Source of the DNA: Styela clava
Taxonomy: Eukaryota
DNA: 64,000 nt
Assembly: GCF_964204865.1 (NCBI RefSeq)
Contig: NC_135257.1
Coordinates: 21,948,001-22,012,000, forward strand
Direction of reading: 5' to 3'
The notes under the pieces: generated by a model
What the model was told of the DNA's origin: nothing
What the model saw: only the letters and a program-made list of their open reading frames with translations
Database searches by the model: none
Shown here: positions 33,600 to 53,152 of the stretch, piece by piece
Layout of the letters: every line of letters starts with the position of its first letter
Position numbering within the stretch: position 1 is the first letter of the stretch
Program-made: the position numbers and the translations under genes

Positions 33600-35413
33600 A
33601 TAATAAGCAATACAAAGCACTTATAGCAGAAATAGCATTTCGAGCTGAATTTTAAAAAATAGGTCACCGAAATGAGATTAAAGAAAAAAGACTACAAACT
33701 ATTCTATTGTTGTAAAATTGCACACACTAAACCACTTGTTGTCAAAGAAATCTACCACCTACTGAGCCAATTCAATGACAACTTCGGATAAACCAAATTT
33801 CGAATGCGACTCCAGTATAAAGATAATTTTGGGTCAAACTCTAAATAAGCAGGCGGTAAAAACAAAAACTTTGTAATTGAAGTCTTCGTGAATTATCTGT
33901 AGCTACTTTATACTGCCTTGGAGTTTCTGTAGGCTACATTTCTCTCCTTTCAGTAACTAACTACGTCTAAGTTGCCATTTCCACAGAGGTTCAAACATCC
34001 TTGTTCACAAAATTACCTACAGAAATAATAAATGATATATTACCTAAAAGTTTGGTAAGTTTGATGTCCGCTTTAGCAGTGTACGTCAGCTTGTATAATC
34101 ATTCAACTTTTCCATTCTCTCTTAACTTACAAATAATTTTAAATAGCTTTGCGTTGAAATTTAATAGCATATGAAACTCACTGCGATTTCTCTGAAAATA
34201 GAATATAGCAAACAACTAAAATTGACTCTGCGATGTCATTATTTATCACACGACATCGGTAATCCGAACTGCGTCAGGAGATAATTATGTGTATTCTGCT
34301 ATATATATCCGATTGCGGTAAATTTTTGGGCATAAAAGCGAGGCGACGAAAACATATCAGTATAGTTTGATATCGATTGCATGGAGACAAGTAGTTAATA
34401 GAATAGTTAGCATGATAGAAAGGGGTTTGAACTTGGTAATTTCTAGACGTGATTTACTACGATAATACCTTTCTGAAAGCAGAATTGTTGCTCTTCAACA
34501 CATTTGTTTGCTTTCGAAAAGTTAAAGACTGAAATATGAGTTTATATATATGTATTATATCTAAATTATGAAGCGACAAAAATGGTCAAACTCAAAAATA
34601 GACGAAGCGACAGGTAAGAATTAGTAAGTTTGCTATTTCTAGTCTGATGTTGCGTTTGCCTCAGGCGATGAAGTCAAACGAAACGATCGGCTTCGTGGTG
34701 TACGGTAAAGATAGACGGCTGTTTTAATTTATCATTGCTGACATGGTCTGGTCTATAAATGGCCAGAGACGACCCTTACTATAATTGGCCCTTTACGAAA
34801 CGGATTGCGCGGGCCCAATCTAAGTGGAGACAAGAAAAATAACCGAAAACTAAAGATTTTGTAAAGGAGAGCAATATAGTGCTTACGTCCTGTTACTTTT
34901 TAACTGTGTATGGAAGCAGAATTCAACCTATTTAGCCCTAGCATGAGCGCGAAGGCCATGGAGCATTGCGGACGTATAGTTTGCAGTGGCCTAAAGCCGG
35001 ACATGGATGTGGTCTATAAATATGTGCATGGTTGAAGTGATTTTACTTTCTCAAGTTGCGAGTACACATAAATTGCCCTGAAGAAACTGAGAACCAGTGG
35101 TACCTTATAGGTGGTGAACACCTCCATCCTCTGAAATTTGAAAAAAAAATTCATTCTAATTTTCAGGTGTGGCACCAAACTCCAATTCTTGGGTAAATAA
35201 AAATGTATACGAATATTCGGAAAGTGGCTCATATGGCGGTGAAGATCATTCCAATAACACATTTTTATCAGTTACAAATAGTTTTATCACTAATAGCAAA
35301 ATATTTACTACCCTCTAAATTTCGATTAACAATTAAAATATAAAGCTGGGGAACGTACTAATAAGAAGTAACTAGAAAAAAACACGATCCAGTCAACACA
35401 CTTACTTTGAACC

Positions 35414-35670
35414 ATGGTGCTCCGCTGGCTTTCCGAGCGTGCCAGGGATCATCAATCTTCTATGGAGCATCTGGACAATGCAGTAAAATACCGAACATTC
35501 GGAAATGTTAATATTGCAGCACAGTTGGATGAAGGACGCGCGGTTTCTATTCGTCGACACAACCAAAACGTCGAGAAAAACCGCCATGTTCTTGGTCGAT
35601 CGATAGATGTTTTGAAGTTCATTGGTTGTCACGAGCTGTCCCTCCGTGGGCACGATGAACGGGCTGGCTC
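35414..35670 (+). mobile_element. Captured internal fragment of a hAT (ZMYM1-like/DUF4371) transposase
   Basis: Encodes ...HQSSMEH...NVEKNRHVLGRSIDVLKFIGCHELSLRGHDE; no TIRs; absent from the paralogous site at 48835-48872. Confidence 0.8.
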
Positions 35671-35800
35671 ATTAGAGTGGCAACCTCCTCGTGGAAGTTT
35701 GAATGAGATTTGCAGCATTTCAGGGTTACGTATTGCTTTGGAATAAACACAAACAAATTTTATTCATTCAGTTATAACGTAAATATTCTGAAACCTCGAG

Positions 35801-38800
35801 ATGAAAATCTCAATCGTTTTGATCTTAAACTACGTCATCACGACATCCTGGTGTCAGGATAAAACAGTGTTCCATTGCTCAGACAAGCGCATTGATGAAA
35901 ATCTGCATGACAAGGAATTCCCGATTACATGCAAATCTATGAACGCTACTGAATCAAGTAATACTGGCAACTGGCTTCCTGTCGTAACTCAAAATAGTTT
36001 AGGTAAGTGAGAACTATTGAACATCATTTTAAAATAGTTTAGGTAAGTAAGAACTATTGAACATCATTTTAAAATAGTTTAGGTAAGTAAGAACTATTGA
36101 ACATCATTTTAAAATAGTTTAGGTAAGTAAGAACTATTGAACATCATTTTAATCGGCGCTCCAGAAGTGTATCTACCAATTGGGGGGGGGGGGGGGGGGG
36201 GGGGGTAACTAGTATTATTCGCCTACTTTACATCAAGTTGTATTAAGTGACTGAAACCCATAGGCATGGTGTATATTCACATGGCTAACACGAACAGTCC
36301 CGAGACTCGTAATAGAGCTAAAATAAGAGAAATCGAAAAAAAAAAAATATTAACCTTACATTAACTTAGTACACACGCTACGGGAGTTGTAGTTTTCAAA
36401 CAGTTTGAATAGTTTATAATATGTATATACAAATTGTATAGTCGGCTAATGCTAAGTTAAGAATATAATAATGCTACAGCTGAACATGAAGCACAAATTT
36501 TTTTCCTAAAACATCAAAATTTCTTTCCTAGGGAGAATTACCATCTGGTTTAATAGAAATTTGGATTCAAATTTTTTTAAGAGTTTATATCTGTTCTTGA
36601 GTAAAACGATATTCATTAGAGATTAACAAGATTACTTCCAGGGGAAACATTCATTTCTCTGGGAGGAAGAATTATAGGAATCTGAAAATGTCATATTTTC
36701 CACCAGAAATTCGCGAGAATCGTAACAAGATCGCAAAACAAACAAACGAAATGAAAGATTTTCGTGATAGAACTCTTCAGCAATCTCGTCAAATTGACAA
36801 TCTACTGGAGGAAAACAAAGAACAAAACTCTGAAATCAGGGACTTGAGGAAAGGTTAGTAGTGCGTTGTCAAAGATTGACCGTTAGTTAATTATTGTTTC
36901 ATTAAAATCTAGGACTTTTACAATTTAAATCTGTGAGAATTTGAAGTTGACCTTGATATAAACATTCATACGTTTGGAAATATGGTTTAAAATAAGTATT
37001 TACGATACTATTAGAATACTTTCATAACTATATTCATCTTACAGAAAGTCGCGAGTTACGGAATAAACTTGTGCTGCAATCAGCCGAAATCGTTGACCTA
37101 AAGAAGAGCCGTGAAGAACAGTCAAGAGAAATTGGGGAATTGAAGAATGGTTTGTGTGACATTTTTAATACGGAATTTAATCTATAGTGATATGGAAATT
37201 CTTTTTGTTGTATGAGATCTCGGAAAAATGGGTCATATTGTAAACATGCTCCTATTATTCCGATATTCAAACTTGAAAAAAAAAATGTGCAGTATGGAAC
37301 TTATACTGAGTGCAGTAATAGGTCACACAAAATTCCAAATCAGCATAACGAATGAACACAACTTGAAATAGAAAAATGAAGATCAATAAGTAGGATTGGT
37401 AATTCACTGCACCCGTTGTTCAATGTGATCTTTCTTTTGATACAAAATAATTTGCAAAAAATTAGATATTTTATTCAAATTTAGAGTATAGTCGAGTTAC
37501 AAGATCAACTGCAAACAAATTGGCTTTTTTGAGGCTGAATTGGACGACATTTTGTTTCTGGTAATCCTGGAAATTGACGCTAACTTATGTATATTCTTCT
37601 ATTCAGCAATGGGTCGGATTAAAGAAAAATTCTCTGCAACGGAGAAGCCTCAACAGGTTCAATCTGGAAACCAACAGAGACCTACGACAACAACCAAAAC
37701 AACATTGAAACCGACACCTTCCCCAGGTAAATTACGTAGTCACATATCCAGAAGTAGGCCTATATGTACCAATATAGAGGTAACTAGTTTTGTTTGGCTA
37801 CGTTACATCAAGTTGTGTAAAGGGACTGAAACCTATGGGCAGGGGTTATATTCACTTGGCTAACGCAGACAGTCCTCGAACTCGTAATACAACTAAAGTC
37901 GCAGAGCCGCAGTCGGAGTCAAGTTTGTTTCAACCCGGAGTCGGGAAAAGATTGTATTTCCCACGACTGCACAGCTCTATCCAGGAGACCAAACTGACAA
38001 CTTTATGAGTGACAGTATGTATATAATTGGCGAAATTAATTTAATTTTCCCTAAACGTCGCGATTTGTGCTTTAAGAAGATGTCTGGCCAGACATCTACG
38101 AATGTGGAATTTGCCATGAGCAAAATTAGACTTGGGAACCAAGTATAGAGGCAAAAGACATATTCATCGGGTCTGTCAAACTTGTTGTTGTGTTCAATAA
38201 TAAAACTTTTCAAATTTATAAATCTGTAAGCTAAATTTTTTACATTTCAGAGAACTGCAAATTAAAGATTGAAAATATGTGTTATTTTGCTGTGATACAT
38301 GATCCATGGGATGTCGACTACGACAAAGCAGTTGATATTTGTAAGAAACGTAACGCAGATGTTGGTTTGATTCGAGATGAAGAATCTTTCAATGCGATTA
38401 TGAATTACTTGGTCAAGTATACTCCCATGGGATTTCGGGGGATGATTATATGGACAAGAATCCGCTTTGATCCAATGGTTAGTGCCATACGTATGTTCTA
38501 TATATAATCGAGCAATTTTTAAATGCAACGATGACATTGTTACCCATCCGGGACTTTTTACACATCAGTATAGTTTGACTTGCTGATGATTGTGATGGAA
38601 TTAGGTGAGTTAAGTGAATTAGGAATCTGTTAAATATCTGGTTTGTTTTTGTTAATTACTGTAGATTGCGCTATTTAGCACATCAGATTCTTTGAGTAGA
38701 GTGGGCACTGTAGTTCCAGGCCTTTTAAATGACCTACGTCTGTCCGAGTTATAACGAACATCCTAATCAGCGTTTAATTTTATCAATCCCATGCAGCATA

Positions 38801-39077
38801 TAAGATAGTAGTGATAGTTACAGTGGATCAAGCATAATTCAATGATAATTTTCATTCAAACATTTTCATTGTTTGTTCTCAGACCCGTGACGTTACTCCT
38901 GCAGATTCATTCATTAAATGGTCAAGTCCATTTGACTCTTTTCCACGGATTGGAATTAAAAATAAAGATCGCACAAATGTTTATCTCCATGTTGATTCGA
39001 AACTGATATGGCACTCAATGGGTAATGCTTCTCCTACCTTGAAGCTAAACGGAGTTATTTGTGAGATTCAGATCTAA
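35801..39077 (+). CDS. Secreted coiled-coil + Pro/Thr stalk + CTLD protein, copy 4 (~331 aa)
   Basis: Exons 35801-36002, 36707-36853, 37045-37149, 37607-37726, 38251-38477, 38883-39077; all GT-AG and in frame (996 nt). Confidence 0.85.
35991..36150 (+). repeat. 4 x 40-bp tandem repeat spanning the exon-1 splice donor
   Basis: AAAATAGTTTAG|GTAAGT(A/G)AGAACTATTGAACATCATTTT x4; single copy in paralogue 5. Confidence 0.95.
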
Positions 39078-39132
39078 AGAAACGTCTGCCTGGTTGTATT
39101 TTGTTCCGCTTGATCATATATTTTAAACCATT

Positions 39133-39739
39133 TGAAACTGCCTCTTTCGCTTCATTATATTTTTTGTTGTTTACCACTGGAGGCGCTGGTGGTACATACG
39201 TTCACAGATTTTAGTGATTGTGACATCATAATACCCCGTGCGCGTTTGCTGCGCGCGCTGCTTCAGTACCTTGATTCGACCTTCTCAGGACTGTGGGATT
39301 TGTGGTGCAAGGTTTTCGTTGTCTGGAGATTTGTAGTTCCAAGGTTTTAATTGTATTTTCATATATTTAGATTTAATAACATTAACTTAATTTCAATAAC
39401 TGTCCCAATCAACTGTCGATTGTTTTGTAAGCTGAAAGCTACACTGTCAAAAAACCGTACTGCCGTACTTCCCGTACACGTATTGATGTACTCTCTTACT
39501 GACGTACTCTCGTATCCACGTATTGTCGTAATCACGTACTGTTGTATTATCATACCTATAACATCGTACCGACGTATCTTCATACACCTGTACTTTCCTG
39601 ACAATAAACGACATCAACTTGTACTGTTATACGCGTCTTTTTGCATTGGAGTGACAAAATCAGTTTACTAAAACAGATCGACCATCTAAGAAATACACCT
39701 GGTGTGGGCGCTAAAGGCACTCCAAATTTGGCGTCTACA
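39133..39739 (+). repeat. 5' LTR (607 bp)
   Basis: Matches 46243-46849 with one mismatch seen (39496 T vs 46606 G); AATAAA at 39603-39608. Confidence 0.97.
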
Positions 39740-39784
39740 TTAGTTTTTTGACATTTGCAATACTGCAACAAAGTTTTTGAAAAT

Positions 39785-40732
39785 ATGGCCGAATCAAATG
39801 ACAACATCAATGAACCAGCTGCCGCTGATGAACTAGTGAACAGAGACAATGATATGTTAGAAAATATGTCGGTTACTGGATCTTCTGAAGCAACTGAAAA
39901 TAATGTAATTGCTTTGCAGACTATTCCAACACAAGATATAATTCCTGTTTTGCCTAATGAAAGTCAATCAACTTCTAAAGATTGTCATAGTGCGTCAATC
40001 AAAGATCTGTTCCTAAGAAGTCCTGATGTAGAGTCAGATGTCCAACCAAGTTCAGAAAAGAACAACCAAGGAGCATCTGTAGCATCTGGCCTTGCTAAAG
40101 AAGGATCAACAAATGCGCATGCTATGACAACAAGGTCGAAGACAAAGACAAATAAAAGCAGGACTTCAAAAATAAATAGTCAGCAACATAGATCAGTAAT
40201 GCGAAGTTTGATAACATCACGCAGTGGTACAATTCGGTCGCGATCTTCACGCTCAATAAGAATGTCCAATTTGAGTGATTCACAAATTGAGAATATATTC
40301 GAAACAAGAAAGCTGAATCAACAAAGGCGCACAGAATTGGAGAAACAACAATTGCAAAATCGCCTAGAAAGTGAGAAACAAATTTGGGAAAATAACAATC
40401 AAGTTGAAAACTTAAATTTAGACAATGAGTGGCAACAGATTCTACAAAAACAGCAAGCTGAAGAGCGTAAAAGAAAGGCCGAACTGGAAGCTTTTCAACA
40501 TCGTCGCCAACAAATGCTACAACGAAGAAACATCGAGATGGAGCAGTTCAACAAGAGGAAGCAGATGAACCTACAAGAAATTGAAGACAAAAACCAACGT
40601 GAACAATTGGAACTGGACACTAATTTAAATGAAACTTTAGCAGAAAGAGGCGTTCTTATAAATACGCCCCCTGTTGCTGCTAGTATCGAAATCAGTCAGC
40701 AGCCAGCCGAGTGCATGTGTGACTGCTGTTGA
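39785..40732 (+). CDS. BEL/Pao Gag N-terminal region (acidic, Ser/Arg-rich, coiled coil), out of frame with the downstream polyprotein
   Basis: First ATG after the LTR; SRSGTIRSRSSRS followed by an E/Q/K/R-rich helix; overlaps the long ORF in another frame. Confidence 0.75.
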   Translation: MAESNDNINEPAAADELVNRDNDMLENMSVTGSSEATENNVIALQTIPTQDIIPVLPNESQSTSKDCHSASIKDLFLRSPDVESDVQPSSEKNNQGASVASGLAKEGSTNAHAMTTRSKTKTNKSRTSKINSQQHRSVMRSLITSRSGTIRSRSSRSIRMSNLSDSQIENIFETRKLNQQRRTELEKQQLQNRLESEKQIWENNNQVENLNLDNEWQQILQKQQAEERKRKAELEAFQHRRQQMLQRRNIEMEQFNKRKQMNLQEIEDKNQREQLELDTNLNETLAERGVLINTPPVAASIEISQQPAECMCDCC

Positions 40733-43700
40733 ATCTGTGTGTGACATGGCCCAAATACCGTTAACATCTGAAAATTTGTTTGTGAGCTCTTGTAGTGTGG
40801 TGAATTCTGGTTTGACTTCCTGTGTACCTGCATCATGTGTATCTAAGCCAAGTTTAAGGTGTTGTGAAATTCCAATGTCATGTGTGGGTGATAACAGACA
40901 ATTGCAGAGCAATGCAATTTACACTGGGGCTGGAACGAACCACAGTGAAATATTAACGAAATTTCCAACTTCATTCAATACTATTCCATTGCATACGACT
41001 AGTTCGGCTGTTAATATGAACCCTACATTACCAACACTAATAGATAATCCTGGCAGAATTGAAAATGCAGAGGCAATGCACTCAGTGAATATTGGCTCAA
41101 TTCGAAAGCCTATTGTGGGCAGTCAACCAAGTAATGCAAATGCACAGAATGACAATATTTCGAATCAACAAGCAGCCAACCCTCAAGTTATATATGTGCC
41201 TCAAACTTTAGGTTTGCCACCATCTGAACCCCCTGTATTTTGTGGTAATGCAGGTGAATATAGGGATTTCATTGATATTTTTGAAACCGTAATTGGTAGC
41301 AGATTACAAAATCCAAAGCACAAACTAGTTTATCTTCTTCAATATACAAAAGGCCCTGCTCGTGCTTTGGTTAAGGGATGCCAGCACAGAACAGATAGCT
41401 ATGATGAAGCTATCCGATTACTTGAAGAAACTTATGGTCAGAAATTTCAAATTGGCGAATCCTGCATTAATTCCATAGCAAATGGTCCTCGACTGAATTT
41501 GAGTAACAAAGAATCATTAACTGTGTATTCAGCAGAAATCATGTCATGCAAAAATACGTTGATAGGGGTTGAATATAAAAATGTTGCCCTTATGACCATA
41601 GAAAAAATAGCTTTAAGAATGCCGCCTGAATGGAGATCTGGGTGGTTATCAAAGATGGACAATGTACTACAAATAAAGAAAAAAGACCTAACAATAGAGG
41701 ATCTTGCTGATTACGTCCGTAAGAAAACTAGAGAAGTATGCAATGTTCCCTCTATCGAATTTAATACTTCAAAACAAATTATTCCCACAAGAGGCTCGAG
41801 GCCATACAAATCCTCATTTGCAACTACAGTTCATAATAATAGACCTGTACGCAGATGTGTAAAATGTGATGGAGATCATTACTTAAATCAATGCGATGAA
41901 TTTCGAGGCATGACGTATGATAAGAGATTGGAGTTTGTAAAAAAGCAAAAGTTGTGTTTTTCATGTTTATTATCTGGGCATTGGGTCAGGGAATGTAAAC
42001 GAAACAACCCTTGCAAAAATGCAAACTGCAGAAGAAAACACACAACACTTCTTCATCCTCCGGATAAGGAACCAATAAAAGTCCCTACATCAAGTAGTCA
42101 TGAAAGTACTACACAAACACATAATGATTATAGGACACAGATGTCTGAAACCAAATTTAATGCATTCCTAAATGCCTCTGACGAACAAAAGGTTTTGCTC
42201 AATGTTGTACCTGTTAAGGTACGCATAGCTGGTAGAAGAAATGCTGTTATAACCAATGCATTCTTTGACAATGGATCGACTTGCTCTTTTATAAGCAATT
42301 CGCTGATGAATAAATTAAAGGTCAATGGACCAGTTACAAATCTGAACATTCGTACGATAAATAATACTGTGGAACACAAGCAATGCACTGTTATAAAGAA
42401 CCTCGAATTAGCAGATTTCGAGGAGTCAAAATATGTAAGGTTAAATCCCTTGTTTTCAAACGATCAAATTGGTGTTGATCAAACAGATATCCCTACACAA
42501 AGTGATCTTGATCAATTTAAAGAATTTAATGGTATTGTGATACCCAAAGTAGAATGTGATGTGGAGCTCTTGATTGGCAAAGATAATCTTGGTTTGCATA
42601 AACCATTGGAAGTGATTTATGGCCCAAACAATTATTTTGCATTGAAGACAATTGCTGGATGGATGGTTAACTGCCCTGCGAAAAATGGAAATACCAAAAA
42701 TTCTACATATTTCACCAAATCTCAACTAAATCCTTTGTGCCAAATGTGTGCAGATGTTGTTGATTCTGCAATTAATGAAAAAGATGAAGTTTCACCAATT
42801 CAACAAGTTTTTCTTGACAAAGTTAGTAAGTCAATTAAGCTCAGAACTGATGGACATTACGAAATAGGTTTACCATTGAAGAATCCTGATGTTAAGTTGC
42901 ACTCAAATAAATATCAAGTTTTGCAGCGAGCAGAATCATTAAAGCGTCGTCTTCACAAGGAACCGGAATTTTATGCAGAATACAAGGATTTTGTTGCAAA
43001 TATGATCACAATGGGTTATGCTGAAGAAGTTCTGGATGCCAATGAAGAAGAAGGAAGGACTTGGTACCTCAGTCATCATGGAGTTCGTCATCCAGAGAAG
43101 AAAACATTGAGGGTTGTATTTGACTGCTCTGCAAAATCAGAAGGAATTTCATTTAATGACATCCTGTTACAGGGGCCGGATTTAACAAATAATTTAGTTG
43201 GAGTCTTGTCACGCTTTCGCAAAAATATTGTAGCTGTTCAAGGGGATATACGGTCCATGTTTCATCAGGTAAAGGTGAAAGAATGTGATAGAAATTTCCT
43301 CCGTTTCTTCTGGTGGGAAAATGGTGACATCACTTTACCCATGAAAATTTATAGAATGGCGGTTTTTCTCTTTGGAACTGTGTGCTCTCCCAGTTGTTGC
43401 AACTTTGCTTTGAGACAAACTGCAATAGACAACAAAGATGATTTTGAACAAAGTGTGATTGATGCAATTAATGATTCATTTTATGTTGATGATTTTTGTG
43501 ATTCTAAACCGGATGCTGCTAGTGCCCTCCAACATATAAAGAGTGTTACTGAAATTGCTGCTAAAGGTGGTTTTGAAGTGACGAAATGGGTGAGCAATGA
43601 CCGTGAAGTATTGGCCTCAATTCCAGAAGCTCACCGATCGAAGGAAGCAAAGCGTTTGGATATCTCTATAGATGAATTGCCTGTTGAGCGAGCTCTTGGC

Positions 43701-46094
43701 ATGATATGGAACGCAAATGAAGATACAATAAGTTTCAGTACTAAATACACTGAACGACCAGCTACCAGACGGGGTATGCTGGGTGTTGTGAACTCAATAT
43801 TTGACCCTCTTGGCATTGGCCAGCCGGTCATTCAACCTATGAAGGTCCTTATGCAAGGATTGTGCAGGAAGAAGCTGGGATGGGACGATTCAATTCCTCC
43901 AGAGTGTGAACAGGAATGGCTAAAGTGGATATCAGAATTATCCAAGTTAGAAGATTTTAATATTCCAAGATGTTTTTTACCGCCTGATTTTGGAAAAACC
44001 ACAGAAATACAAATTCATCACTTTTCTGATGCATCCGAAAAGTCTTATGGTGCTGTTTCATATATACGTTTAAAAAATTCGTCTGGACAAATTCATTGCT
44101 CAATACTGTGTGGTAAAAGTCGATTAGTACCTCTCAAAGGCTCAACGATTCCCAGGTTAGAGTTATGTGCAGCAACAATATCTGCGCGAAATGAAAAATT
44201 CTTCCGTAAAGAACTCAAGCTCCCAATTGATGCATCTATATTTTGGACGGATAGCACCACCGTATTACGATATTTGGCAAATACTGATAAAGTTCTAAAA
44301 ACTTTTGTTGCAAACAGGGTGAATGTTATCAAAGAAGTTTCTGATGTGAATCAATGGTACTATGTGCCTTCCAAATTAAACCCTGCAGATGTTGCATCTA
44401 GGGGCATGTCTGCTGATCAATTTTTGAACTACCCACAATGGAAATTTGGACCAGAATTTTTATGGAAAAATCAGGAAGAATGGCCTAAACAACCAGATTT
44501 CCTGCATACAATGAATGATAAGAATTTGGAATTTAAAAAGCAGAGTCCAGATTCACAGATGTGTTTTGCTCTAAATACAGATATACCTACTGTATTAGAC
44601 CAAGTTACTAATAAATATTCAAATTGGTTCAAAATGAAGAAGATTGTAGCATGGGTTTTACGTTACAAGCGAGCACTGCTTTCCAAGGTCAGAGAGGATG
44701 TTTCTTGCAATTTGGGGAGTGAAAATAATAAATTTTTATCTGTGGATGAAGTGAACTTGGCAGAATTGGAAATAATCAAAAATGAACAATTCAAATATTA
44801 TTCAAAGGAAATTAATGTATTGACCAAAGGTGAACAATTGCCAAAATCAAGTTCATTGTGTAAATTGCAGCCTATTATGAAAGAAGGTCTTCTCCGTGTT
44901 GGTGGAAGAATTGGAGCATCGAGTCTTCAATATGACGCAAAACATCCTATAATAATTCCAAACAAGAGTTCTATTGCTAATTTGATTATTGAACATACTC
45001 ATCAAGTTACAGGCCATAGTGGAAGAGAATATGTAATTGCTGAATTACATCAAAAGTTCTGGATTATAAAAGCAAATGCAATGACACGAAAGATTCTCAA
45101 CAACTGTATATCTTGTCGCAAGAGACAGCGGGCACCTGAATCTCAATTGATGGCCGACCTCCCAGAAGACCGATTAATACCAGACAAGCCACCTTTCTCT
45201 TTTGTCGCTCTTGACTGTTTCGGTCCATTTCTTGTTCGTCAAGGACGAAGCGAAGTAAAAAGATATGGTGTTATTTTCACTTGCCTAGTGACCCGTGCAG
45301 TGCATGTTGAAATTGCACATAGCCTAGATACAAGTGCCTTTATAATGTCTCTTAGAAGATTCATTTCAAGAAGAGGACAAGTAGTTGAAATAAGATCAGA
45401 TAACGGAACAAATTTTGTCTCTGGAGAACAAGAATTGAGAAATTCTATCAAGACTTGGAATCAGAATCAAATACATAGGTTTTTGCTGCAAAAGAACATC
45501 AAGTGGCTGTTTCAAACTCCAGCGGCTTCTCACCATGGTGGAGTTTTTGAGAGACAAATCAGAACAATTAGAAAAATTTTCAACGCTATTTGCAGAGAAC
45601 AAAAATTAACTGATGAAAGCTTAATTACACTTATGTGTGAATGTGAATCCATAGTGAATGGAAGGCCAATAACAACTGTATCCAATGATCCAAAAGATTT
45701 GACTCCTTTGAGCCCGAACAATTTGTTGTTGTTGAAAGAAGAACCGATACTTCCTCCAGGAGTATTTGATGCTAAAGACTTGTATGTTCGTAAGAGATGG
45801 AAACAAGTACAATACTTAGCTGATGTGTTTTGGAAAAGATGAAGACGAGAATACCTTCCTCTGCTTCAAACAAGACAAAAATGGAACAAAGTTCAAAGGA
45901 ATTTAGCTAAGAATGATGTTGTACTTGTGATGGATGAAAATTTGCCAAGAAATGCATGGCTGTTGGGTAGAATCATTGGAACGTTTCCCGACAACAAAGG
46001 CCGTGTACGTTCTGCTACGGTGCAAACCAACCATTCAATCTTAGATAGGCCCATTACTAAATTAATTCTTCTGTGTGCAAGTGACTCTGATTGA
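40674..46094 (+). CDS. BEL/Pao Gag-Pol polyprotein, interrupted by a premature TGA at 45840-45842
   Basis: DUF1759-like Gag (PPVFCGNAGEYRDF), three Cys/His knuckles, protease FFDNGST, RT YVDD, RNase H HFSDASEKSYG, integrase HHCC and D-D-E (LDCFGP, SDNGTNF, FERQIR). The frame continues past WKR* as RREYLPLLQTRQKW...RPITKLILL (DUF5641-like) to TGA at 46092-46094. Confidence 0.95.
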
Positions 46095-46242
46095 GTTGTG
46101 TGCAAAACCCATTTCGTTTGACTCTAGTTGAATTGTGTGTATGTGAGATCAATTCCGTTTTTAAATTTTGTGATTTTGTTTTTGAGTGTGTAGAAATTTC
46201 AAATTTGTGGATGGCAAATTCTCAATTTCTAAGGGGCCGGGA

Positions 46243-46849
46243 TGAAACTGCCTCTTTCGCTTCATTATATTTTTTGTTGTTTACCACTGGAGGCGCTGGT
46301 GGTACATACGTTCACAGATTTTAGTGATTGTGACATCATAATACCCCGTGCGCGTTTGCTGCGCGCGCTGCTTCAGTACCTTGATTCGACCTTCTCAGGA
46401 CTGTGGGATTTGTGGTGCAAGGTTTTCGTTGTCTGGAGATTTGTAGTTCCAAGGTTTTAATTGTATTTTCATATATTTAGATTTAATAACATTAACTTAA
46501 TTTCAATAACTGTCCCAATCAACTGTCGATTGTTTTGTAAGCTGAAAGCTACACTGTCAAAAAACCGTACTGCCGTACTTCCCGTACACGTATTGATGTA
46601 CTCTCGTACTGACGTACTCTCGTATCCACGTATTGTCGTAATCACGTACTGTTGTATTATCATACCTATAACATCGTACCGACGTATCTTCATACACCTG
46701 TACTTTCCTGACAATAAACGACATCAACTTGTACTGTTATACGCGTCTTTTTGCATTGGAGTGACAAAATCAGTTTACTAAAACAGATCGACCATCTAAG
46801 AAATACACCTGGTGTGGGCGCTAAAGGCACTCCAAATTTGGCGTCTACA
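46243..46849 (+). repeat. 3' LTR (607 bp)
   Basis: Direct repeat of the 5' LTR, preceded by the PPT and followed by the TSD. Confidence 0.97.
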
Positions 46850-48217
46850 CCATTAATTCCTAATTTGAAATTGCTGTCGAAAATTTATTGAGAGTTTGAT
46901 TATCAGGATTTTTTGTTTTGCAGATCTAACTACTTTGCATTCTAATGGTATAGATGTGAAATTTAGAGATTCAATGTTTAATTCGGGTAATTTTAGAAAT
47001 TCTGAAACAAAAATATTATGTACTTGACTCATTGATTCAAAATAAATCCGGCTTCCATAACAGGTCTCTTGCATCCTAGCCATCTAGACAGGGGTACTAG
47101 GTTTTCGAACGACGGGCCAAACATTTCGTCCACCTAGACTGGCTGACTGACATGTAAGTGTGACATGAAAAGTGAACATTTTATGAACAATATAGTGGAG
47201 AACAATAAGCCTCGTGCCCAAACTAAATTTTATTGCAATCTCAATCCCTTGAGCTATTTTTTAGCTGAAACATCAAAATTTAGTTTAGTTCGGATGTGGA
47301 AGCATCAGGCAGGTCAGATTGAATTACCCAAAGGATCATATTTGGGCCGCAGGACGTAGTTTGCCCATGTTAGATCTAGATGCATTCTGATATGATTATG
47401 TAGGTAAGGTAAGTTGTCCTTCAGCCCTCACAACGTCTCTACATGAAAATCGGTTGAAACGACGAATATATTCAGATATTAGTCAAATCCTTAAACGTTT
47501 GGTTTCTGTGATCACGTGCGTGGTATGAAAGCATTGTTTATATCTAAAGAGGAAAACGATACGACGGCTCAATCTTATGGCGAACCATGGCCTTCTTTCA
47601 GTTACCACTTCATATCGGGAAGGGAAATTGTTAATCGATTAGTTGTTGCTGATGAATGAACTTCATTAAGGATTATTCGCTATTTGATTAAGGCGACCCC
47701 AGAGCAGAGCCAGGGTTAGGCTCTCGATAGTGAAAAAGACATGAAGTTGGATACTCCGCCGCTGTGTCGTCGATTCCTGCTACCTCGTCGTGTACCATAA
47801 TTTTCTTCCGATTTTCCTTATTTTAATTCTTTTACGATTTCCCACACAGTCTGTGTTAGCAAAGTCAATATAACACTGCCTGTCGTAATCTTTCCTTCAC
47901 ACAACTTGATGTAAAGTAGACGGACAAAATTAGTTACCTGCATAAGGTTGCAAAATTGCGTATGTCCCCAAGTCATAACCACATTTCTGCCTAAGTCACA
48001 GTGCGCCATTATGACGTCACTTAACTGCGTCATACAAGTTAACTTAAATCCGGCTACGATCAAAAAATTGAACCATGGCAAATTATTGACTCTCAATGGC
48101 ATAACAATATCATTAGGAAGTTTTTTACGTTTTTCTCAAAACTGCTAAAAATGATTTACGCAATTCGGTTATTAGCGTGACGATATGATAGTTGAGTTTA
48201 ATAACTTACACTTAGAA

Positions 48218-51200
48218 TGAGCGCGGATGCCATGGAGCATTGCGGACGTATAGTTTGCAGTGGCCTAAAGCCAGCCATGGATGTGGTCTATAAATATGTG
48301 CATGGTTGAAGTGAATAATAATTTTACTTTTTCAAGTTGCGAGGACACATAAATTGTCCCGGGGAAACTGAGAACCAGTGACCCCCTATAGGAGGTGAAC
48401 ACCCCCGTCTTCTGAAATTTGAAAAGGTGTGGCACCAAACTTCAATTCTTGGGTAAATAAAAATGGGGGCTCCCGAAGTATGCGAACCAAGATGGCGGAC
48501 ATCGGAATGTAATATGTGTACTAGGTTAGGGTTAGGCCATAATTTTAGGTATAAATACTACGGGAGGCTCTTGGCTAGTCTTCGAACTGATAATAGGACT
48601 AAAATAAGGAAAATTGAAAAAAAATTATGGCCTAACCCTAACCTGTTACCCATGTTACGTTCCGATGTCCGCCATCTTGGTTCGCATACTTCGGGAGCAC
48701 CGTTTTATCACTAATAGCAAAATATTTACTACCCCCTAAATTTCGATCAACAATTAAAATATAAAGCTGGGAAACGTACTAATAAGAACTAACTAGAAGA
48801 AAATACGATCCAGTCAACACACTTACTTTGAACCGCGAGTTTCAGAACAACGAGTTACGAGTGGCGTCATTTATTAGAGTAGCAACCTCGTGGAAGTTTG
48901 AATGAGATTTGCTGCATTTCATGGTTACGTATTGCTTTGGAATAAACACAAACAAATTTTATTCATTCAGTTATAACGTAAATATCCTGAAACCTCGAGA
49001 TGAAAATCTCAATTGTTTTTATCTTAATCTGCGTTATCACGACATCCTGGTGTATGAACGCTACTGAATCAAGTAATACTGGCAACTGGCTTCCTGTCGT
49101 AACTCAAAATAGTTTAGGTAAGTAAGAACTATTGAACATCATTTTAATCGTCGCTCCAGAAGTGTATGTACTAATATGGGGGGGTAACTAGTATCATTCG
49201 CCTTCAAGTTGTATATATAGATTGAAATCCATGGGCATGGTGTATATTCACATGGCTAACACAGACAGTCCCGAAACTCGTAATAGAGCTAAAATAAGAG
49301 AAATCGGAAAAAAATTATAACCTAACATTAACTTAGTACACACGCTACGGGAGTTGTTGTTTTCAAACAGTTTGAATAGTTTATAATACGTATATACAAT
49401 TTGTATAGTCGGCTAATGCTAAGTTAAGAATATAATAATGCTACAGCTAAATATGGAGCAAAAATTTTTTTTTCCTAAAACATCAAAATTTCTTTCTTAG
49501 GGAGAATTACCATCTGGTTTATTAGAAATTTAGATTCAAATTTGTTGGAGAGTTTATATCTGTTCTTGAGTAAAACGATATTCATTAGAGATTTACAAGA
49601 TTACTTCCAGGGGAAACATTCATTTCTCTGGGAGGAGGAATTATAGGAATCTGAAAATGTCATATTTTCCACCAGAAATTCGCGAGAATCGTAACAAGAT
49701 CGCAAAACAAACAAACGAAATAAAAGATTTCCGTAATAGAACTCTTCAGCAATCTCGTCAAATTGACAATCTACTGGAGGAAAACAAAGAACAAAACTCT
49801 GAAATCAGGGACTTGAGGAAAGGTTAGTAGTGCGTTGTCAAAGATTGACCGTTAGTTAATTATTGTTTCAATAAAATCTAGGACTTTTACAATTTAAATC
49901 TGTGAGAATTGGAAGTTGACCTTGATATAAACATGCATACGTTTGGAAATATGGTTTAAAATAAGTATTTACGATACTATTAGGATATTTTCATAACTAT
50001 ATTCATCATACAGAAAGTCGCGAGTTACGGAATAAACTTGTGCTGCAATCAGCCGAAATCGTTGACCTAAAGAAGAGCCGTGAAGAACAGTCAAGAGAAA
50101 TTGGGGAATTGAAGAACGGTTTGTGTGACATTTTTACTACGGGATTTAACCTAGTGGTATGGAAATTGTTGTATGATATCTCGGAAAAATGGGTTATATT
50201 GTAAACATGCTCCTATTATTTCGATATTCGCACTTGAAAAAAAAAATGTGCAGTATGGAACTTATACTGAGTGCAGTAATAGGTCACACAAAATTCCAAA
50301 TCAGCATAACGAATGAACACAACTTGAATTAGAAAAGTGAAGATCAATAAGTAGGATTGGTAAATCACTGCACCCGTTGTTCTATGTGATCTTACTTTTG
50401 ATACAAAATAATTTGCAAAAAATTAGATATTTTATTCAAATTTAGAGTATAGTCGAGTTACAAGATCAACTGCAAACAAATTGGCTTTTTTGAGGCTGAA
50501 TTGGACGACATTTTGTTTCTGGTAATCCTGGAAATTGACGCTAACTTATGTATATTCTTCTATTCAGCAATGGATCGGATTGAAGAAAAACTCTCTGCAA
50601 CGGAGAAGCCTCAACAGGTTCAATCTGGAAACCAGCAGAGACCAACGACAACAACCAAAACAACATTGAAACCGACACCTTCCCCAGGTAAATTACATAG
50701 TCACATATCCAGAAGTAGGCCTATATGTACCAATATAGAGGTAACTAGTTTTGTTTGGCTACGTTACATCAAGTTGTGTAAAGGGACTGAAACCTATGTG
50801 CAAGGGTTATACTCACTTGGCTAACACAGACAATCCTCGGACTCGTAATACAACTAAAGTCGCAGAGCCGCAGTCGGACTCAAGTTTGTTTCAACCCGGA
50901 GTCGGGAAAAGATTGTATTTCCCACGACTGCACAGCTCTATCCAGGAGACCAAACTGACAACTTTATGAGTAACAGTATATATATAATTGGCGAAAGTAA
51001 TTTAATTTTCCCTAAACGTCGCGATTTGTGCTTTAAGAAGATGTCTGGCCAGACATCTACGAATGTGGAATTTGCCATGAGCAAAATTAGACTTGGGAAC
51101 CAAGTATAGAGGCAAAAGTACATATTCATCGGGTCTGTCAAACTTGTTGTTGTGTTCAATAATAAAACTTTTCAAATTTATAAATCTGTAAGCTAAATTT

Positions 51201-53152
51201 TTTACATTTCAGAGAACTGCAAATTAAAGATTGAAAATATGTGTTATTTTGCTGTGATTCACGATCCATGGGATGTCGACTACGACACAGCAATTGATAT
51301 TTGTAAGAAACGTAACGCAGATGTTGGTTTGATTCGAGATGAAGAATCTTTCAATGCGATTATGGATTACTTGGTCAAGAATACTCCCATGGGATTTCGG
51401 GGGATCATTATATGGACAAGAATCCGCTTTGATCCAATGGTTAGTGCCATACGTATGTTCTATGTATAATCGAGCAATTTTTAAATGCAACGATGACATT
51501 GTTACCCATCCGGGACTTTTTACACATCAATATAGTTTGACTTGCTGATGATTGTGATGGAATTAGGTGAGTTAAGTGAATTAGGAATCTGTTAAATATC
51601 TGGTTTCTTTTTGTTAATTACTGTAGATTGCGCTATTTAGCACATCAGATTCTTTGAGTAGAGTGGGCACTGTAGTTCCAGGCCTTTTAAATGACATACG
51701 CCTGTCCGAGTTATAACGAACATCCTAATCAGCGTTTAATTTTATCAATCCCATGCAGCATGTGAGATAGTAGTGATAGTTACAGTGGATCAAGCATAAT
51801 TCAATGATAATTTTCATTCAAACATTTTCATTGTTTGTTCTCAGACCCGTGACGTTACTCCTGCAGATTCATTCATTAAATGGTCAAGTCCATTTGACTC
51901 TTTTCCACGGATTGGAATTAAAAATAAAGATCGCACAAATGTTTATCTCCATGTTGATTCGAAACTGATATGGCACTCAATGGGTAATGCTTCTCCTACC
52001 TTGAAGCTAAACGGAGTTATTTGTGAGATTCAGATCTAATGAAACGTCTGCCTGGTTGTATTTTGTTCCGCTTGATCATATATTTTAAACCATTAATTCC
52101 TAATTTGAAATTGATGTCGAAAATTTATTGAGAGTTTGATTATCAGGATTTTTTGTTTTGCAGATCTAACTACTTTGCATTCTAATGGTATAGATGTGAA
52201 ATTTAGAGATTCAATGTTTAATTCGGGTAATTTTAGAAATTCTGAAACAAAAATATTATGTACTTGACTCATTGATTCAAAATAAATCCGACTTCCATAA
52301 CAGGTCTCTTGCATCCTAGCCATCTAGACAGGGGTACTAGGTTTTCGAACGACGGGCCAAACATTTCGTCCACCTAGACTGGCTGACTGACATGTAAATG
52401 TGACATGAAAGTGAACATTTTATGAACAATATAGTGGAGAGCAATAAGCCTCGTGCCAAAACTAAATTTTATTGCAATCTCAATCCCTTGAGCTATTTTT
52501 TAGCTGGTTGTGGAATCATCAGACAGGTCAGATTGAATTACCCAAAGGATCATATTTGGGCCGCGGGCCGCAGTTTGCCCATGTTAGGTCTTGATGCATT
52601 CTGATATGAATATGTAGGTAAGGTAAGTTGTCCTCCAGCCCTCACAACGTTTCTACATGAAAATCGGTTGAAACGACGAATATATTCAGATATTAGTCAA
52701 ATCCTTAAACCTTTGGTTTCTACGATCACGTGCGTGGTATGGAAGCATTGTTTATATCTAAAGAGGAAAAAAGATACGACGGCTCTTATGGCGAACCAAG
52801 GCCTTCCTTCAGTTACCACTCCATATCGGGAAGGGAAATTGTTAATCGATTAGTTGTTGCTGATGAATGAACTTCATTAAGGATTATTCGCTATTTGATT
52901 AAGGCGACCCCAGAGCAGAGCCAGGGTTAGGCTCTCGATAGTGAAAAAGACTTGTTGGATACACCGCCGCTGTGTCGTTGATTCCTGCTACCTCGTCGTG
53001 TACCATAATTTTTTTCCTATTTTCCTTATTTTAATTCTTCTACGATTTCCCACACAATCTGTGTTAGCAAAGTCAATATAACCCTGCCTATCGTAATCTT
53101 TCCTTCACACAACTTGATGTAAAGTAGACGCACAAAATTAGTTACCTGCATA
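48218..53152 (+). repeat. ~5-kb tandem segmental duplicate of 34943-47944 (minus the LTR element)
   Basis: Collinear high identity across introns, MITEs and 3' flank; last CTLD exon identical by eye. Confidence 0.92.
49000..52039 (+). CDS. Secreted coiled-coil + Pro/Thr stalk + CTLD protein, copy 5 (~303 aa)
   Basis: Exons 49000-49117, 49676-49822, 50014-50118, 50568-50687, 51213-51439, 51845-52039; GT-AG, in frame (912 nt). Confidence 0.85.

Follow-up and report, generated by a model that had tools for sequence, protein, structure and literature searches.

Reverse transcription that is primed by the element's own RNA is best known from Tf1, Tf2 and Tj1 of fission yeasts and from the Tf1/sushi group, which are Ty3/gypsy chromoviruses. 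In these elements, an 11-nt stretch of the LTR RNA is complementary to the site just after U5, a tRNA site is lacking, and a U5 stem-loop sits beside the duplex (PMC7175516, PMC4600332). Self-priming has further been predicted for the plant Tcn1 (gypsy) and TAR (copia: Houba, Osr-1) lineages, by the criterion of an LTR complement of 10 nt or more that starts 0-5 nt after the LTR (PMC6317226); there, the complement is contiguous in the LTR and no splicing is involved. Other elements whose primer site lacks TGG, such as copia, Ty5 and the plant Osser and Bianca lineages, use internal tRNA or half-tRNA sites, which match tRNA-Met or tRNA-Ile halves (PMC6317226). In contrast, the ICTV profile of the Belpaoviridae (BEL/Pao, Semotivirus) describes an 18-nt site complementary to the 3' end of tRNA-Arg or tRNA-Gly, with tRNA priming (PMC8742986), and the BEL/Pao element Achilles uses tRNA-Tyr (PMC4580426).

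We analyzed a stretch of 64,000 nucleotides of the sea squirt Styela clava (the window), which holds one LTR retrotransposon; all coordinates refer to the window and all features of the element lie on its forward strand. The LTRs (39133-39739 and 46243-46849) are 607 bp long, have TG...CA ends and differ only at position 39496. The element is flanked by a target-site duplication CCATT (39128-39132 and 46850-46854). It is inserted in one unit of a roughly 5.24-kb tandem duplication (34932-38506 and 46846-47944 versus 48206-53152), whose other unit preserves the empty site with a single CCATT at 52090-52094, so that the LTR ends are exact. Between the LTRs lie a 45-nt leader, a gag-like ORF (39785-40732, first ATG at 39785) without a Pfam hit of its own, an overlapping pol ORF of 1722 aa (40674-45842) and a polypurine tract, AAGGGGCCGGGA (46231-46242), directly before the 3' LTR. 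The pol ORF contains Peptidase_A17 (2.9e-48), the gag-type domain DUF1759, RVT_1, Integrase_H2C2 and rve, in that order. Its nearest database proteins are named from Styela clava and carry the same Pfam set. In domain content, gag-pol organization, LTR ends, 5-bp target-site duplication and polypurine tract this is a BEL/Pao element, and a young one. It belongs to a different superfamily from the Tf1/sushi clade and lives in an animal host; as it does not belong to that clade by descent, any self-priming here would be convergent or independently retained.

The 5' LTR ends ...GGCGTCTACA at 39739 and is followed by the 14 nt TTAGTTTTTTGACA. The last eleven of these, GTTTTTTGACA (39743-39753), are the exact reverse complement of TGTCAAAAAAC at 39445-39455 in the LTR, which recurs at 46555-46565 in the 3' LTR. 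AATAAA, a poly(A) signal, lies at 39603-39608, 158 nt downstream of the 11-mer. The sequence-only reading that had pointed to this self-complement, to the lack of a tRNA site and to a hairpin at the U5 end was accurate in what it described. The hairpin is longer than it had noted, with 16 bp including G-U pairs and an 11-nt loop (39700-39742, predicted −19 kcal/mol). In the window, the 11-mer occurs only at the two LTR sites, the primer-binding site (PBS) position and one other place, against an expectation of 0.15 on both strands. A perfect complement of 11 nt or more between the 25 nt after the LTR and a 607-nt Markov-shuffled LTR arose in 0.4% of 20,000 trials, and at one fixed 22-nt junction window in 0.008%. 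The site is A/T-rich, and it was picked in a search for such matches, so that the look-elsewhere effect is large.

A tRNA-type site is lacking. The only TGG in the 60 nt after the LTR overlaps the gag ATG at 39786, 47 nt downstream, which excludes a full-length tRNA. A search with Rfam on 39000-40000 returned no hit, and no tRNA was found in the window or in the loci retrieved from the genome. The PBS position is part of a conserved 18-nt block, AGTTTTTTGACRTTTGCA (39742-39759), and exact matches to its complement occur in the genome only at these elements. An Rfam tRNA search of the genome returned almost only one cluster of tRNA-Lys(UUU) genes, which do not match the site; the comparison with host tRNAs thus rests on this set alone. 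The cluster is a dense array of more than 100 tRNA-Lys(UUU) genes and variants, one every few hundred bp, at 15.88-15.94 Mb of sequence C2 (C and L numbers are our labels for sequences and loci of the searched genome). PBS-like 18-mers with two mismatches were seen elsewhere in the genome, but not preceded by an LTR end. One of these, TGCCAACGTCAAAAAACC, recurs on C4 and C5 in plus/minus pairs 3.3-4.5 kb apart (for example C4:7081661 and 7086030, C5:6410102 and 6414618).

In a genome search with 39400-39900, every other copy aligned in two pieces, with about 226 extra bp between 39450 and 39451. The copies read ...CTACACTGTCAA, then 226 bp, then AAAACCGTAC..., giving an LTR of 833 bp. The extra segment begins GTACGT and ends TTGTTTGTTTTATTTAG, that is, with a splice donor, a pyrimidine tract and an acceptor; a tandem-repeat origin is not supported, as the segment has no internal periodicity. 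About 50 other LTRs of this family (A) and of a sister family (B) carry an insert of 198-232 bp at this place, which starts GTACGT or GTAAGT and ends in a pyrimidine tract plus TTTAG, and is therefore a GT-AG intron. Genome-wide, 50 LTRs carry the exon-donor motif and only the two window LTRs carry the joined form, with the junction between 39450 and 39451 and between 46560 and 46561, respectively. The 11-mer TGTCAA|AAAAC is thus an exon-exon junction that does not exist in the DNA of the family at large, and the window element, which has lost the intron precisely from both LTRs, is a copy made from spliced RNA. We hold the intron and the processed-copy reading with high confidence. The unspliced 833-bp LTR has no complement of 8 nt or more to the 40 nt after the LTR; a search for complements elsewhere in the element likewise found none of 8-9 nt or more, and RNA duplex scans gave no conserved site. 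A possible intronless relative of the junction, present in four copies, has no predicted primer site beside it.

The window copy also lacks 218 nt after 40705 that three other copies, on C2, C16 and C18, have. The boundaries of this deletion are not GT-AG and its length is not a multiple of three. As a result, gag and pol lie in two overlapping ORFs, where other copies have a single ORF of 2186-2232 aa. Two further loci, at C9:5.39 Mb and C6:5.46 Mb (L006 with L011, L012 with L013), share the same family A copies and the same flanks, suggesting a segmental duplication or an uncollapsed haplotype.

Family B was found in a gag search (pol about 73% identical, gag 44-51%). Its 1.1-kb LTR starts and ends like that of family A, and although aligned LTR columns are only 50-60% identical, four blocks are nearly invariant: the initiator-like motif with the exon end and donor; the acceptor and exon start; a block near the poly(A) region; and the U5 hairpin with the LTR end and the 18-nt post-LTR block. 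The initiator-like motif (YYANWYY) reads CTACACT at 39439-39445 and CTACATC in family B, and marks a candidate region for the transcription start site (TSS), inferred from sequence alone. The position homologous to AATAAA reads AACAAG in family B. An 8-nt periodic (C)GTA array (39456-39580), which begins at the first bases of the downstream exon, is partly conserved in family B; as GUAC is self-complementary, a role in dimerisation or packaging is conceivable. One family B copy (L068, C314:158814-162719) has a different stretch upstream of its U5, with a 192-nt periodic repeat containing GCATCGGCGTCGAAAGAAGCC, which may be an insertion or an LTR variant.

Family B has ...CTACATCGTCAA, then GTAAGT...TTTCTGTTTAG (198-210 nt), then AAAACCGTAC, and after the LTR TAAGTTTTTTGACG. 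Removing the intron in silico gives CGTCAAAAAAC, a perfect 11-nt complement of family B's own site. In family A, TGTCAA|AAAAC faces GTTTTTTGACA; in family B, CGTCAA|AAAAC faces GTTTTTTGACG. The single difference between the families is compensated, with T pairing with A in family A and C pairing with G in family B. This linkage holds in every copy listed, namely four A and nine B post-LTR sites and about 20 A and 26 B donors. One B copy (L072) has a further change in the post-LTR site that lengthens the complement to 13 nt. Across 18 distinct LTR copies the intron boundaries are kept, while intron length varies between 198 and 232 nt. The absence of LTR/PBS complementarity in sister families had been named beforehand as an outcome that would speak against self-priming, and family B shows the opposite. 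However, only these two related families were compared, leaving out more distant ones (66% and 44% pol identity) and homologues in other species, so the covariation rests on one base pair plus one variant copy.

To see whether the spliced RNA could adopt a priming structure, we folded the spliced 5' RNAs of both families from the 11-mer onwards. Both are predicted to fold with nt 1-11 paired to the post-LTR site (pair probabilities 0.65-1.0), and this duplex stacks on the terminal U5 hairpin, which is kept in family B, where one G-U pair becomes G-C. As we chose the starting point ourselves, this shows compatibility and not proof.

Thirteen public runs contain the stretch, of which eight look like transcriptomes by their size and by the lack of cover on the flanks; that they are RNA is a guess, and they were examined as assembled contigs, which cannot show transcript starts or ends. 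In two studies (runs X1 and X2), a 60-nt unitig covers exactly the junction-spanning words (39421-39480). Contigs also run from 39450 into GTACGTATTTCAG, so spliced and unspliced forms both occur. Further contigs join the polypurine tract to the LTR start, which shows that the 3' LTR is transcribed. At 39496 the contigs carry the allele of the 3' LTR and of the other copies, not that of the window's 5' LTR. The 30 junction-spanning 31-mers reach 30 nt upstream of the junction, so at least some spliced RNAs carry upstream LTR sequence, although these may be 3' LTR copies. One contig of run X1 continues from the donor into sequence that is absent from the assembly and from the retrieved loci; it may represent a splice from the LTR donor to another exon, or a variant in that individual. 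Depth steps in the contig tables gave no interpretable TSS.

The interpretation offered by the sequence-only reading, namely that this BEL/Pao element primes itself independently of tRNA with the first 11 nt of its transcript, as Tf1 does, is partly supported. The assignment to BEL/Pao, the lack of a tRNA-type site and the conserved complementarity hold up, but the splice junction had been missed, and plain priming with the first 11 nt of the transcript, as in Tf1, does not describe the family. We propose instead Tf1-like self-priming with a primer created by splicing. In this model, a transcript that starts at or just before the T/C of the 11-mer is spliced, joining six bases at the end of a short upstream exon and five at the start of the downstream exon into (U/C)GUCAAAAAAC. 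Its 5' end would pair with the site 3 nt after U5, next to the U5 hairpin, be cut by RNase H after AAAAC, and prime minus-strand DNA. Since the template would then begin downstream of the junction, strong-stop DNA would never copy the junction; after transfer to the 3' end of the RNA, synthesis would run through AAAAC, the unspliced intron and the upstream exon into U3, so that progeny LTRs regain the intron. If the 3' copy of the intron is spliced too, an intronless copy such as the window element would result. This would account for the persistence of the intron, the rarity of intronless copies and a site length of exactly 11 nt in both families. What our analysis establishes is the anatomy of the element, the intron, its precise loss in this copy, the conserved and compensated complementarity and the absence of a tRNA-type site; the TSS (which the sequence-only reading had predicted at 39445), the RNase H cleavage, the priming itself and its action in cis or in trans are inferred.

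We consider functional self-priming through the spliced junction only somewhat more likely than not. The compensated difference between the families and the position of the match argue for the element's own RNA as primer. The match meets the published sequence criterion for predicted self-priming (PMC6317226), in copies other than the window element and in family B only after removal of the intron, and it has the same length as the Tf1 primer (PMC7175516). On the other hand, if transcripts start at 39445, the first exon has only 6 nt, which is unusually short for cis-splicing, and if they start well upstream, the 11-mer is internal and copying of a long primer would obstruct the plus-strand transfer. 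Host splicing also acts on the 5' part of the RNA of other elements, as in spliced LTR-retrotransposon RNAs such as those of Cer1 (PMC12786077). Splice donors also lie in retroviral leaders or R regions, those of HTLV and foamy viruses being in the R region. Here, however, donor and acceptor both lie inside the LTR, and the exon junction itself forms the complement of the primer site.

Among the alternatives, all of which we consider unlikely, the one that survives best is priming at the conserved block by a host RNA other than a full-length tRNA, such as a tRNA fragment or another small RNA, with the match to the spliced junction having arisen by chance in the common ancestor of families A and B. 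The conservation of the 18-nt block beyond the 11 paired bases would be expected for a site read by a shared cellular factor, priming from internal tRNA sites and half-tRNA sites has precedents (PMC6317226), and the A/T-richness of the site and its selection for complementarity also favor this reading. Against it, no genomic locus other than these elements holds the 18-mer complement, the A/G difference in the site is matched by T/C in the LTR, and the chance of 11 nt or more at a fixed junction window is about 8e-5. Further, a run of six A is not known as a feature of cytosolic tRNAs.

Somewhat less likely still, the junction-PBS pairing may be real but regulatory, masking the primer site or closing the 5' region in spliced RNA and thereby separating spliced messenger RNA from unspliced genomic RNA. 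The pairing indeed exists only after splicing, only one of about 13 elements with a PBS is intronless, as expected if spliced RNA is rarely reverse-transcribed, and spliced RNAs with upstream LTR sequence exist. Yet this reading leaves the element without any identified primer, although the paired stretch sits exactly where a primer must anneal, 3 nt after the CA end of the LTR, and it is less economical, as the Tf1-like model also explains why the intron is retained. Finally, a random 226-bp deletion that happened to create a match to a low-complexity stretch, which the A6/T6 run, the restriction of the contiguous 11-mer to this copy and its ordinary 218-nt deletion might suggest, is very unlikely and largely refuted by the consensus GT-AG boundaries and pyrimidine tract of the missing segment, their conservation in a family with 50-60% LTR identity, and the same latent complement with a compensating change in family B.

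Self-priming is so far tied to Tf1/sushi-type gypsy elements and to some plant lineages, and our literature searches, in which most subscription journals were not represented, found no report of self-priming in BEL/Pao and none of an intron inside an LTR whose exon junction forms the primer. In practical terms, PBS-finding tools that compare the post-LTR site with tRNAs, or with the unspliced LTR, would label these elements as having no PBS. In its strongest form, which we put forward tentatively and regard as slightly less likely than not, BEL/Pao elements of a tunicate prime reverse transcription with their own RNA and the primer is made by the host spliceosome; the intron inside the LTR splits the primer sequence, so that only spliced RNA can prime, and the intron is inherited because the primer is cut off before strong-stop DNA reaches the junction. 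This would be the first self-priming described in Belpaoviridae and the first primer of reverse transcription that depends on splicing. If the model holds, it adds a third superfamily to self-priming, shows a new link between host splicing and the start of reverse transcription, and explains how an intron can persist in an element that replicates through RNA.
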